A stretch of 64,000 bases of DNA from Octopus sinensis (taxonomy: Eukaryota). The stretch covers positions 81,344,001 through 81,408,000 of the forward strand of contig NC_043001.1 of NCBI RefSeq assembly GCF_006345805.1, in the 5' to 3' direction. How positions within the stretch are numbered: the stretch's first letter is position 1; each line of letters begins with the position of its first letter. The notes below the pieces were generated by a model. It ran no database searches. It was given only the letters and a program-made list of their open reading frames with translations, and had not been told where the DNA came from. Positions 45,301-51,300 of this stretch are shown here, piece after piece. The translations under genes and the position numbers were made by a program.

Positions 45301-48300
45301 AGTTGTGGCAGGGGTGGGAGAAACAAACAGAAGATGGATTCTGGGTTAGGAAAAGCTAATAATCCTTCAGTTGTACGTAGTATGTTCTTAGTACTTTCTT
45401 TCTACGTAATGTGTTTTGTGTTGATGTTGTTGTTGTTGTTGTTGTTGTTGTTTGTGCAGAGCTTTTAAATTTTTTTTTTTTTTTCCATTTTTAAACATTT
45501 TTAACTTTGCATTGGAAAACTTCCCCAGAATGTTGTTATAAGGTTACTTTTGAGAATAAACAACAGTTTTAAAAAGAAGAAAAAAAAAGATTTTAAAACA
45601 GATCAGCTAATACAGGAACAACAACAACAATAATAATCATAATCATAACTTTGAAAAATGAAAAATAAAAATTTTTTATTCAAATGATCAATACTATGAC
45701 ATAGACAACAAAAGCGGGAAATAAAACAAATACACCAACAACCACTAGTAGTAGTGGTAGTGGTGGTAGTAGTAGTAGTAGTAATAGCGGTGGTAGTAAT
45801 AGCAGTGGTAGTGGTAGTGGTAGTTGTAGTTGTAGCTGTAGTGAAACAGTAATCAGAGAGTGAGAGGAGACAGAAGAGCTACCACAATAACTGCAACAAG
45901 AGCAACTACAATATGCAAAATACATTCTGAAAAATTTAGAAATTTTAAAATTTCTACTAAAGGTTTCTTTTACATTCATTCTGTTATTTTTATTATCATT
46001 GCTTTCGTCTTCATTATTATTATTATTATTATTATTATTATTATTACTGAAAACAAGGATAAAATCATTTGTAATTTCTGAAGAAAATATTAAAACAACT
46101 GAAAGTGGATTTATCAAAGATTTATGTTAGATCATGGTAATTGTTTTTTTTTTTTTATTTTGTTTTAATGCACAAGCATGGCTGTGTAGTTAATGAGCTT
46201 GCTTTGCAACCACACACTCTTGGGTTCAGTCTCATTGCATGGCACCTAGGATGAGTGTCTTCTACTAGAATCCGTGGCTGATAACCTTGAGAGTGAATTT
46301 GGTAGACAGAAACAGTGTGGAGGTCCATTGTATATGTATACTTATATAAATGTGTGTGTGTCTTTAAGTTTGCTCCCTCACCCCATTGCTTGACAACAGC
46401 ATTTCAGTAAAAGAGACTGACTGACAGACTATGTACTAGACTTTAAAAAAAATATTTATGATAAATATGATAAGTACTGAGATTGCTTTCTTAGTTTAAA
46501 CCATTCATGGTAGTGCCCCAGCATGGCCACAGCCCAGTGACTTGACTACGTAAATGATAAATGGTAAAATGTATTTCTGAAGCTCAAAGTTTATATGAAA
46601 GAAGAAAGCAAGAACCTTTTAAGTATTTTCTCTTAGTCTACATGTCAACTAAGTAGGACCAGTTATTGGGAGTCATCATCATTTAGTGTCTGCTTTCCAT
46701 GCTGTCATGGGTTGGCCAGTTTGACTGAAGCTGGTAAGCTGGAGAGCTGCACCAGGTTCCAATCTGATTTGGCATGTTTTCTACAGCTGGTTGCCCTTCC
46801 TAACACCAACCACTCCAAGGGTGTAATGGGTGCTTTTTACTTGGTGCTGGCATCGGCCACAACTGTGATTTCATTTGGCTTGATGAATCTTCTGAAGCAT
46901 AGCATATCACCAAAGGTCTCAATCACTTATCACTTCCATGAGGCTCAATTAAATTTCAGAACCCGAAGTTTTGAACAGCAATATATATGAGGTGAGGCAC
47001 ATGTCTTTCCAAAGCAAATTAGAGACATAATCATTGTATTTAATTTATCTTTTATCTTTTTACTTGTTTCAGTCGTTAGACTGTGGCCATGCTGGGGCAC
47101 TGATTTGAAGAATTTTTAGTTGAATGTGTCAACTCCAGTACTTTATATTTTTAAAGCCTGAAACTTATTCTAGCAGTCTGTTTTGCTAAACCACTAAGTT
47201 ACAGGGACATAAACATGCCAACACTGGTTGTCAAGCAGTAGTAGGGGAGGGCAAAGGCATGCACACACTCACACACTCATATACGATGGACCATTTTTAG
47301 TTTTCATTTCCCAAATCTACTCACAAGGCTTTGGTTGGCTCATGGCTATAATAGAAGTCATTTTCCCAAAGTGCCACACAGTGGGACTGAACCCTTAACC
47401 ATGTAGTTGAGAAGTAAGCTTCTTACAACAGAGCCACTTTTCCATACTTGCATAAGTCAGGTGGAATTTATTGAGGCAAATTTCCTATAATTAGGTGCTC
47501 CTCCTGTCACTAACCTTCACCTGTTTCCAAGTAAGGTAATATTCCCCATGACCAGACATGTTTTCATGGAAGATTGAAAATAAAGGACACCGCTTGTATG
47601 ACGGTGACATTCATTTACAACTATTACCTGAAGTCAAGGCAACCAGACAGTAACATAGACACATACATACACTTGATGTTTGTCTCATCTCATCAGATGA
47701 TAGTCATCTCACATTCAACCTGATTGTTCTGATTTGCTTTCATCTATGCATTTGCATAGATATGACTTTTCAGCTATACACCCATTGCCATAGAACATTA
47801 TGAAAGATAAAACAGGTCAAGAAATGAAATGATAGTGAGACATCTGTATGTCATTGGATTTAAGTGATAAAATCTTTAAGACATTTCAACCATGCTCTAT
47901 CAACATAGTAGGTTCCAATGACAAGCATTGCAAGATGGCTGGCATTATTTTGACTGCAAGTTTTATGACAGAGCATCTTTCTCCTAGAAGAGCTGTCTTT
48001 CCTATACCTTTGTCAAAAATGACAAGAGTCTTCTCCAGGGTCGGATTAAGACCCATCGAGGCCCTAAGCACTTAAAAGATTTTGGTGCCCCCATAAAGGC
48101 TTATGTAATTCAAAATTTAAACAATAACAAACCATAAAATAAATTTTTATTTTTCAAAATGAAACAAAACATTAAGAGGGAAAATAATGTTTATTTTTGT
48201 ATACTTCCACTTCATTAATAGAGGACTGTGCCGGAAAACCCTTATTTTTGCTGTTCCAAGCAATCAAAGTTTTCTCCTACATTTTAGAATTGCAAAGTCT

Positions 48301-51300
48301 TTGCTCAGATCCTCAAAATTAATCTTAGGTAACACATCTGCATCTATACTTAGAAATAAAGGCATCCTGAATATTATTTTAGCAACTTTAAAGTGATTTC
48401 TTTTGTACCATAAACTATTTACCATTTCTGTGGTGCCCCTCCTTCCCTTGATGCCCTAAGCACGTGCTTATTTTATTTAATGGTTAATCCAGCGCTGGTC
48501 TTCTCTACTCCTGAGAAATTTACCCTGGCAGATGCTACTGTTCCTGGTCAAAACAGACCAAGGAGTAATGGTAACTAAGGGTGACACCATGCTCCCCACA
48601 ACTCCAGAACTCCTGGATTGAAGCCTCACCACTGGATGCATTTTAATGTCATACCCAGGACACACACACACACTCATTTGTATACACATGACAGGCTCCT
48701 TTCAGTTTCTGTCTGCCAAATCCACCTACAAGGCATTAGTTTGCTCAGGGTTATAGCAGAAGACACTTGCTCAGGGTACCACCCAGTGAGACTGAACCTA
48801 GAACCATGTGGGAGGGAAGCAACATGCTTACCACACAGCCATGTCATGAAATGATTGCAGGCTTGGTTTTCGACTGCACTGGTACCACTAGTGCAAAGGA
48901 TTAGTGTTAACTGATTTAATCCATATTAGTACATAACTGGTATAAGTCAAGGAAGCCTTTCTGTGGTTCAAATCACCCTCAAATTGACATTGAACTATCA
49001 CAAACTTATAAAAGGAAAATATTACCATCTGGATTGATCTTTGTAAAAGCCTAAAGGGATGAAGGGTGAAAACAGCACCATCAGGATTTATTTTTGGTAG
49101 TATGAGGTACATCTAGTTGCTGTTACTACTTATACTGCTACCACCACTAAGGAGCTAAGGAGTAGGACTTGGTGGAGGAAGAGGAGGTAAAAGCAAGTCT
49201 GTGTGTGACTGCATATCCACATGAAGAAATGAAACAATGTATGTATGTGTGCATCTGGATAAATGAGTAAAAGTACATGTGTATGTCAACACACACACAC
49301 ACACACACACACACACACACAAAGACTGATGTACATATACATCAGCAAGCTAAGAATAAAAAAATATATATATAAAACAATGACAGACACAATATGGCAG
49401 ATATTTCTATATTTTATGAGAAAAAGGAGCAGTCTGTCCCCACTTTTTAGGGAGAATAAGGAGTAGTCTAGGCAGATGCATAAGGGATTGAAGAGGAGAA
49501 TCACTCCCCCCCCCTAATAGGGGAGGAGGTACCTGAAGGAGTGAGGGTATGCACAGGAAGAATACTATTAGCATTCCTTTCTTTTCAAAGAAAGGGGAGA
49601 AAGGCTACAACTAGAGACAAGAATAATAAAACAGAATTGCAATCTCCTCCTCATCCTCCTCTCCCTCCTCTTCTATACATCTAAATCTTTAAGGGACAGA
49701 CTTGTTATATTTTCTTTGTATTTTATGTCTTTCAGACGGGGAGTTTGGGATAGGAAGAGGCTGCAAAGGAAGAAAAGCTGAGGAACAGCTTCATAGAGGG
49801 GGACACACACACACACACACACACACACACACACACACACACACATACAAAACATATGTGTATGTGTATATGTAGATGCAGAGAGATGGACAAACAGATG
49901 CCAGGGCAGAAAGATAAAGGAATAGTCAGGCAGTTGATATTTAGATAAATAGATTGAGATATATTGAAAGAGTCAGCCAGCCATATTGAGAGGTACTGAA
50001 GTAGGGGAACAGTTTGTAAAGTATATCTATCTATCTATCTGTCTGCCTGCAAATATATGTATGCATGTGTGTATATACAAATGCACGCATGATGTATGGC
50101 TTAGCTGGTCAAAACTTTGAAGTCACTGCCAACAACATTGTTATTTAAGAATAATAAATATGTACTCTACAAAAGTACAGAGCAACTCATCAGATTAATA
50201 TAAAATTGTTTTTATTATAACTGAACATGAAAACAAACATTAATGTGTGTGTGCGTGTAGATATATATATATGTATATATATATATATATTATTTGTTTT
50301 TATGTATATAAGTACAGGCATGACTGTGGTAACAAACTTGCTTCCCAACCACATGGTCTTAAGGTTCAATTCCATTGCATAGCACCTTCTACTACAGCCC
50401 CAAACTAACCAAAGTTTTGCATGTGGATTTGGGAGACAGAAGCTGAAAGAAGCCCAGCTTGGCACAACCTTTGCCAGCTCTTGTCAAACCATCCAACTCA
50501 TGGAAAAGACGTTAAATAATTATGGTGTGTGTGTGTGTTACTGTCTCCTTACCTTGACTTCATGCCATACTTATAAACAAATCTCATCATCCTGCAATAG
50601 TGGCCTTTTGTTTCTAATCTCCTGTGAAAACATGTCTGGTGTTGGGTGAAGGTTGGCAACAAGAATGGCATCTGTCTACAGAAAATCTGTCGCCACAAAT
50701 TCTCTCCAACCCATGTAAGCTTGGGAAAGTGGATGTTAAACAATGATGATGCTCTCTGTCTGTCTGTCTCTCTCTCTCTCTCTCTCTCTCCATATATATA
50801 TATACATACCTCACACACACGTACACACATATATTTCATGTGCTGGAGACACATGAAAAGCACCCGTGCCAGTGAGACATAACTGGCATTTGGTACGCTC
50901 TGTGGAGTGGCTGGCATTAGGAAGGTCATCCAATTGTAGAAACCAAGCCAAAACAGACTGGAACTTGATGCAGCTCTCTGGCTTCCCTGTTCCATTCAAA
51001 CTGCCTGACCCATTCCAGTATGGAGAACAGACACTATGATGATGATGGTAATGGTGATGGTGGATGCAGGCATGGCTGTATGATTAAGAAGTTTGTTTCC
51101 CAACCATACGCTTTCAAGTTCAGTCAGAATGCACAACACTTTCAGCAAGTCTTCTAATTATAATTCTGGGCCAACCACAAACATAAAATAAGTTGACAAA
51201 GATTCCATGAATTTCTGGGTTTAACGTTTCCCTCTTTCTCTCTTTCTTTGTAGGACTGTGCCGGAAAACCCTTATTTTTGCTGTTCCAAGCAATCAAGCA

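Follow-up and report, generated by a model that had tools for sequence, protein, structure and literature searches.

A perfect 46-nt copy of a plexin exon start within a hAT-like element of the preceding intron in Octopus sinensis, read as a possible templated insertion

How does a short mobile element in an intron come to hold an exact copy of the beginning of the exon that follows? The question is raised by a 64,000-nucleotide stretch of the Octopus sinensis genome (NCBI RefSeq assembly GCF_006345805.1, contig NC_043001.1, positions 81,344,001 to 81,408,000 of the forward strand), which we refer to as the window and in whose own coordinates all positions are given. Within it, a hAT-like element at 48036–48497 lies in an intron of a plexin gene and contains a 46-nt segment identical to the start of the next plexin exon, including the AG of the splice acceptor. 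An earlier reading made from the letters of the window (the sequence-only reading) had described the segment as exon capture by a hAT transposon. Our analysis favors, with a probability of about 0.5, a templated insertion, or filler DNA, that arose in break repair or in a template switch during replication and for which the transposon was a bystander.

The copy and its donor, whose coordinates are collected in Table 1 with those of the other features, agree at 46 of 46 positions on the forward strand, and the copy lies 3,030 bp upstream of the donor in the same orientation, exactly as the sequence-only reading had it. By chance, 0 such matches are expected, and none of 100 dinucleotide-preserving shuffles contained any match at three or fewer mismatches. 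The limits of the identity are sharp, with a preceding base of g in the copy versus t in the donor and a following base of a versus g. In a self-comparison of the window, the 46-mer is the only repeat that is at least 95% identical, simple sequence and one 24-mer aside. Because the interspersed repeats among the 40 longest listed are all at most 81% identical, the 46-mer stands out from the other repeats of the window. The donor is intact, and the sequence was therefore copied rather than moved.

The direction of copying is from the exon to the element, as conserved plexin coding sequence runs from the first residue of the exon and thus identifies it as the source. The translated donor exon matches the Pfam family Plexin_cytopl (PF08337) with E = 4.2e-12, starting at residue 1, and a protein search with it returned 26 plexin-A-like matches, one of which is named plexin A; all of these are short, exon-sized fragments with at most 79% identity. 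A tblastn search, for which a plexin-A cytoplasmic sequence served as the query, places colinear plexin exons on the forward strand at approximately 37004–37090, 38866–38941, 51254–51402, and 52969–53127.

Whether the 46-mer belongs to the element or only to this copy of it is answered by sister copies of the element family, which were found through an HMMER search of a minus-strand open reading frame (ORF) of the element against 1.84 billion proteins. Only two matches were returned, P0027 and P0028, both of them short unannotated ORFs on contigs assembled from public sequencing runs. The DNA behind them represents two independent loci, L001 and L002–L005, the latter being a single locus seen in four runs. 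In a MAFFT alignment, both loci align end to end with 48036–48497, the homology stops exactly at the terminal inverted repeats (TIRs), and each locus is flanked by an exact 8-bp target-site duplication (TSD) of its own (ATCTTTCG for L001 and TTTCGATT for L002–L005). With the insert left out, the window copy is 82% identical to L001 and 79% identical to L002. The element is a real mobile family of approximately 416 bp, which is also the approximate length of the 462-bp window copy without its insert, and its 8-bp TSDs, together with termini that start with CAG or CAA, agree with a non-autonomous element of hAT-like type.

Across the insert site, the sister copies read TTTAT(G/A)T(A/T)TGAA(G/A)AG(T/G)TTCCTCC with no 46-mer, while the window reads TTAATAG, then the 46-mer, then AGTTTTCTCC, in which AGTTTTC stands directly after the 46-mer. 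Since neither sister copy has the 46-mer or any interruption where it would stand, the insert belongs to the window copy alone and was copied locally. The sequence-only reading had left it to other copies of the family to show whether the 46-mer is a local acquisition or an intrinsic part of the family consensus; two independent copies are colinear with the element and have no insert, which indicates local copying, and the 46-mer is absent from L001 and from L002–L005. By the same alignment, we can exclude that the 46-mer marks an internal-deletion junction of a full-length hAT element, made by abortive gap repair, since the sister copies are colinear across this point. We also rejected the idea that AGTTTTCTCC (48268–48277) repeats the target site AGTCTTCTCC a third time, as the sisters have AGTTTCCTCC and AGGTTCCTCC there, and it is thus family sequence.

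The local part of the earlier claim of exon capture therefore stands, while the transposon-mediated part is not supported, given that no further fragment-carrying copy was found at the two sister loci or in the window and that the donor is 3 kb away. In a Pack-type hAT element, the transposon would have taken up the exon fragment and moved with it, or the family would routinely bear gene fragments. A gene fragment between TIRs is what such an element would display, and rare gene capture by hAT elements has been reported in maize (PMC3260210), but both sister loci are without any insert at this position, the 64-kb window contains no second copy, and the fragment is just 46 nt long. Moreover, a donor at a distance of 3 kb points to an event in situ, as a copy that had moved would seldom adjoin its donor. 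We consider this explanation very improbable.

Table 1. Positions of the copied segment, its donor, the surrounding element, and the plexin gene features in the window
Feature	Position	Strand	Remarks
Copied 46-mer	48222..48267	+	AG plus first 44 nt of the downstream plexin exon; 46/46 to donor
Donor	51252..51297	+	Intron-final AG (51252–51253) plus first 44 nt of the exon; intact
5' part of non-autonomous hAT-like element	48036..48221	+	186 bp; colinear with L001 and L002
3' part of hAT-like element	48268..48497	+	230 bp; colinear with family copies
5' TIR CAGGGTCGGATTAA	48036..48049	+	Homology to family copies starts here
3' TIR (reverse complement CAGCGCTGGATTAA)	48484..48497	-	Family homology ends here
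Left TSD GTCTTCTC	48028..48035	.	Exact
Right TSD GTCTTCTC	48498..48505	.	Exact
ORF, 53 aa	48264..48425	-	Read earlier as hAT transposase C-terminus; no tool support
Plexin-A cytoplasmic RasGAP-domain exon	51254..51402	+	Pfam PF08337, homologues, tblastn; followed by gtgagt
Upstream plexin exon	38866..38941	+	Ends in CCTCCAG, followed by gtaagt; tblastn 81% over 26 aa
Intron holding the element	38942..51253	+	12,312 bp; directly upstream of the donor exon

The junctions of the insert suggest how it was made. In the MAFFT alignment, the gap at the insert spans 40 columns, not 46, and the ends of the insert, namely its first four bases (AGGA) and its last two (AA), match the family columns at five of six positions. 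The chance of such a fit is 0.024 (2.4% of the 46-mers in the window fit as well), where the family sequence is deduced from two diverged relatives. This suggests that the net new DNA is approximately 40 nt (48226–48265), joined at microhomologies of approximately 4 nt and 2 nt; alternatively, up to 6 nt of element sequence may have been lost. The insert contains no poly(A) or A-tract, and no TSD of at least 5 bp surrounds it, with at most AG being repeated on both sides. It thus displays neither of the two features, a poly(A) and a TSD of at least 5 bp, by which LINE-mediated (class 1) templated insertions or retrocopies are recognized (PMC5110952). Taken together, the undisturbed donor, the lack of both poly(A) and a separate TSD, the probable microhomology, and a loss of a few bases at most form the signature of a templated insertion. 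Microhomology and small deletions have been described both for templated insertions (PMC4032859) and for class 2 templated-sequence insertions (PMC5110952).

From these features, we infer the following course of events. A double-strand break would have occurred, or a nascent strand would have stalled, at approximately 48221–48226 in a hAT-like element that was already present in the intron. A polymerase could then have primed through the AGGA microhomology where the acceptor meets the exon, using either the same chromosome or its sister chromatid as the template, and copied approximately 40 nt (40–46 nt) from the exon start, leaving the donor untouched. A switch back, with rejoining through the AA microhomology and a loss of 0–6 nt of the element, would have completed the event, and its product would be a neutral scar within the intron. 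That the event landed in a transposon needs no special explanation because at least 34% of the 12,312-bp intron consists of repeats that recur within the window, with the element itself uncounted. The octopus genome as a whole is reported to be approximately 66% repeats (PMC13282606).

The age of the insert relative to that of the element is less constrained than had been thought. The sequence-only reading had placed the capture after the insertion of the element because the TIRs are diverged while the insert is perfect. This order is not supported, as the two TIRs differ from each other at positions 4–7 in all copies, a family trait that cannot date the element. A three-way comparison instead assigns 21 private changes in 403 columns (5.2%) to the window copy, and at this divergence, the probability that 46 bases remain unchanged is 0.085 even for an insert of the same age as the copy. 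The insert could therefore date back to the insertion of the element or be far more recent.

Several points weigh against a templated insertion in which the transposon was a mere bystander. At the junction, the proposed microhomologies depend on a family sequence deduced from two other copies, and these differ from each other there. The templated inserts made by polymerase theta in Caenorhabditis elegans copy sequence close to the break (PMC4032859), and the distance of 3,030 bp to the donor contrasts with the tens of bp of classical polymerase-theta footprints; strand invasion or template switching fits this distance better than snap-back synthesis. The model also leaves unexplained why the copy begins only 0–4 nt away from the splice acceptor. 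Of the window ORFs that span or flank the junctions, seven were looked up as exact sequences, and none is on record. Finally, the timing of the insert relative to transposon activity is such that a link to transposition could exist.

The TIRs of the element, CAGGGTCGGATTAA and CAGCGCTGGATTAA, agree at 11 of 14 positions, and the 8-bp TSD (gtcttctc) is exact, both in agreement with the sequence-only reading. The TIRs of hAT elements are short and start with 5'-YARNG, a motif that both termini of the window copy fit (CAGGG and CAGCG). Among the four termini of the other copies, one fits it fully (CAATG), while TGGAA, CAGCA, and CAAAA deviate from it by one or two bases. Two subterminal motifs also occur toward either end of the element, (G/T)GCCCTAAGCAC at 48053–48071 and 48445–48463 and GGTGCCCC at 48079–48087 and 48441–48449. 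The two motifs occur in mirrored order and direct orientation and are partly conserved in the sister copies, and they could be transposase-binding subterminal repeats.

The minus-strand ORF had been read as a hAT transposase C-terminus, and this assignment finds no support. Pfam gave no match for the window ORF, P0027, P0028, or the consensus; a PDB profile search with the ORF likewise gave no match, a word-index protein search with it produced no candidates, and the ORFs of the two sister copies are its only matches among the 1.84 billion proteins. The reading frame is furthermore not preserved between copies, and the 53-aa ORF is probably fortuitous or degraded past recognition. Its tail resembles some hAT C-termini, a resemblance that we take as a lead only and do not count as support. 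Because non-autonomous members of a family need not retain coding sequence, the missing coding relationship lowers only the claim of a transposase remnant. The stop codon of the ORF had been described as supplied by the captured piece; the TGA at 48266–48264 does lie inside the copy, but the same frame without the 46-mer stops two codons later, and the stop was thus not really the contribution of the insert.

If transposition was involved, one route would be transposition-coupled gap repair, in which the element was excised from one chromatid, the gap was filled from the sister chromatid by synthesis-dependent strand annealing, and the nascent strand detoured to the exon and left filler behind within the restored element. 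In maize, filler DNA in Ds2 and Ds-like elements, which is occasionally genic, has been attributed to replication errors in post-excision repair (PMC3260210). In keeping with this route, the insert lies within a genuine hAT-like element whose ends are intact and whose TSD is perfect, a local donor would suit a repair event at the locus, and with only approximately 5% private divergence of the window copy, the insert could date from the active period of the family. Nothing points to an active transposase, however, and neither an autonomous partner nor a coding remnant emerged from the Pfam, PDB, or 1.84-billion-protein searches. The 5' TIR of the window copy departs from the family 5' consensus at three positions, and with one-third or more of the intron made up of repeats, the event requires nothing from a transposon. 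Large internal deletions are the typical product of abortive gap repair, whereas only approximately 0–6 nt were lost here. We therefore regard gap repair as doubtful, although we rank it first among the alternatives to a bystander transposon.

The start of the copy at the splice junction raises the separate question of whether the template was DNA or RNA. In the spliced mRNA, the final AG of the upstream exon would precede GACTGT (CCTCCAG/GACTGT). The sequence-only reading had noted that the upstream exon also ends in AG, so that a genomic and an RNA-derived template are both possible, and we confirm its CCTCCAG end. Because the intron and the upstream exon both end in AG, the first two bases of the copy are compatible with genomic DNA and with spliced RNA alike, and the base that precedes them in the copy (g) fits neither the genomic (t) nor the spliced-mRNA (c) sequence. 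As a rough estimate, a correctly oriented start drawn at random from the genomic DNA within ±5 kb would fall at this point with a likelihood of approximately 2.5e-4, and a random start in a spliced mRNA of approximately 6 kb would fall at the junction of this exon with a likelihood of approximately 4e-4. The two roughly cancel, since proximity favors DNA and the junction favors RNA.

An RNA-derived patch, in which a fragment of spliced plexin mRNA, either reverse-transcribed or used as a direct template, mended a break in the intron, would account for a copy that starts where exon–exon continuity gives AG and GACTGT and that has no unambiguous intron base. The donor is transcribed, and class 2 insertions are enriched for transcribed sequence and show microdeletion and microhomology without poly(A) or TSD (PMC5110952). 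Against this stands the absence of any upstream-exon base beyond the ambiguous AG, where the mRNA would have a c before it. In addition, an exon junction is not marked as an end point in spliced mRNA, and a source that is the nearest exon in the same orientation favors a DNA template in cis. Despite the similar likelihoods above, we consider an RNA-derived patch unlikely and place it after gap repair. Less likely still are the two outcomes that would carry the most weight, namely that the germ line of a mollusc used RNA-templated repair by the mRNA of the broken gene itself, or that the insert acts as a pseudo-exon that affects plexin splicing. On the latter subject, we observe that a potential pseudo-exon of 105 nt (48224–48328) with an in-frame stop is bounded by the acceptor and exon start of the copy on one side and by a donor-like AG/GTAACA (48328/48329) on the other and that the AG/GACTGT of the copy sits behind a moderately pyrimidine-rich stretch.

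An error of assembly or polishing, such that the 46 nt are not at this place in the genome of the animal, would also produce a copy that is perfect and isolated, and it would be in line with the look-ups that returned no record. The window furthermore holds a 461-bp tandem duplication of 99% identity (3986–4925) that is real or an assembly problem. However, there are no Ns or gaps within the window, and the junctions share at most 2–4 nt with the flanks of the donor, which is far too little for a misjoin in a k-mer graph. The anatomy of the junctions, with microhomology and a small loss, looks biological, and we judge an artefact to be improbable.

Further observations concern the element family and its relatives in the databases. 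P0028 (L001 1116–1520, 134 aa) is a false gene prediction that runs over a transposon copy; it needs an internal TGA to be read through, and the gene at the locus was reported not to translate to the protein. The contigs of L002–L005 come from runs within SRR11869385-94, and their positions 105–169 match 34187–34251 of the window at 77% identity over another 65-nt repeat, which is unrelated to the element. Because this repeat is common to both, the source genome of L002–L005 is related to that of the window. A scan of metagenomes with the family alignment yielded one locus, L006, which we rejected as a false positive of the peptide-pattern scan. It lies on a human gut metagenome contig (OZGC01002971) in a 1029-aa bacterial ORF with a chance DADMLPKIN, and it has 27–35 nt in common with the element. 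A scan of viral contigs with a conserved 20-mer of the family gave 0 matches.

The window contains several other repeats. The 461-bp unit at 3986–4925 is present in 2.0 tandem copies of 99% identity within an older array with a period of approximately 232 bp and approximately 65% matches, and the pair stems either from a very recent tandem duplication or from the assembly. Two perfect direct copies of the 24-mer GAAACTGAAAGAAGCCTGTCATAT are found at 14764–14787 and 43514–43537 between unrelated flanks; they probably represent a conserved interspersed-repeat core. One interspersed family of approximately 380 bp occurs on both strands at 68–81% identity (2494–2882, 24601–24875, 27720–28091, 38246–38611, 47057–47438, and 57138–57539), with one copy approximately 600 bp upstream of the hAT-like element and another just upstream of the exon at 38866. 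A second, larger family with approximately 65–70% identity (3534–5176, 15865–16323, 31483–31860, 39051–39540, 55238–56034, and 60807–61809) is partly tandem or nested. In a search of 47000–52000 against Rfam, only sub-threshold, simple-repeat miRNA models were reported.

As we read it, the locus presents one clean, natural templated insertion whose donor can be identified at a distance of 3 kb and which by chance lies inside a transposon, and it illustrates that ordinary repair can mimic the "gene capture" of transposons. If exon-derived patches proved to be common genome-wide, or enriched at splice junctions, RNA-templated repair in the germ line would be indicated. If the duplicated acceptor were used in transcripts, there would be a consequence for the gene of a neuronal guidance receptor.

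When compared to known systems, the insert shares with Pack-MULEs and other Pack-type elements a host gene fragment between terminal inverted repeats. Unlike in Pack-MULEs, neither mobilization nor amplification after the capture is apparent, the fragment is shorter by an order of magnitude, and the sister copies carry nothing. The filler of maize Ds2 and Ds-like elements (PMC3260210) is a closer parallel, in that foreign, occasionally genic DNA is found in a non-autonomous hAT-type element with an 8-bp TSD, and it has been attributed to replication errors during break repair (PMC3260210). The maize filler, however, replaces large internal deletions and consists of hundreds of bp, with introns, from other chromosomes, whereas the window insert is 46 nt from a distance of 3 kb, and the colinear sister copies show that the window copy is not a deletion derivative.

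The human class 2 templated-sequence insertion polymorphisms described by Onozawa et al. (PMC5110952) are similar in being short patches of transcribed sequence at an unrelated site with end-joining junctions. Their donors usually lie far off or on another chromosome, and their RNA origin has experimental support, while in our case, the donor is the next exon and either template is possible. Fork stalling and template switching and microhomology-mediated break-induced replication offer a further likeness in that synthesis jumps a short way ahead and comes back, with strand and orientation unchanged, over a few kb and at microhomologies. These mechanisms are usually invoked for larger, complex rearrangements, and a single 40-nt insertion fits replication or break repair alike. 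Finally, polymerase theta-mediated end joining and the filler DNA of plants differ from the event described here in the position of the donor, which is 3,030 bp off rather than beside the break, and in length, as a single tract of 40–46 nt is at the long end of their range. They are like it in that the insert is identical to a nearby, intact donor, has probable microhomology at both junctions, is accompanied by the loss of at most a few bases, and bears neither a TSD nor a poly(A).

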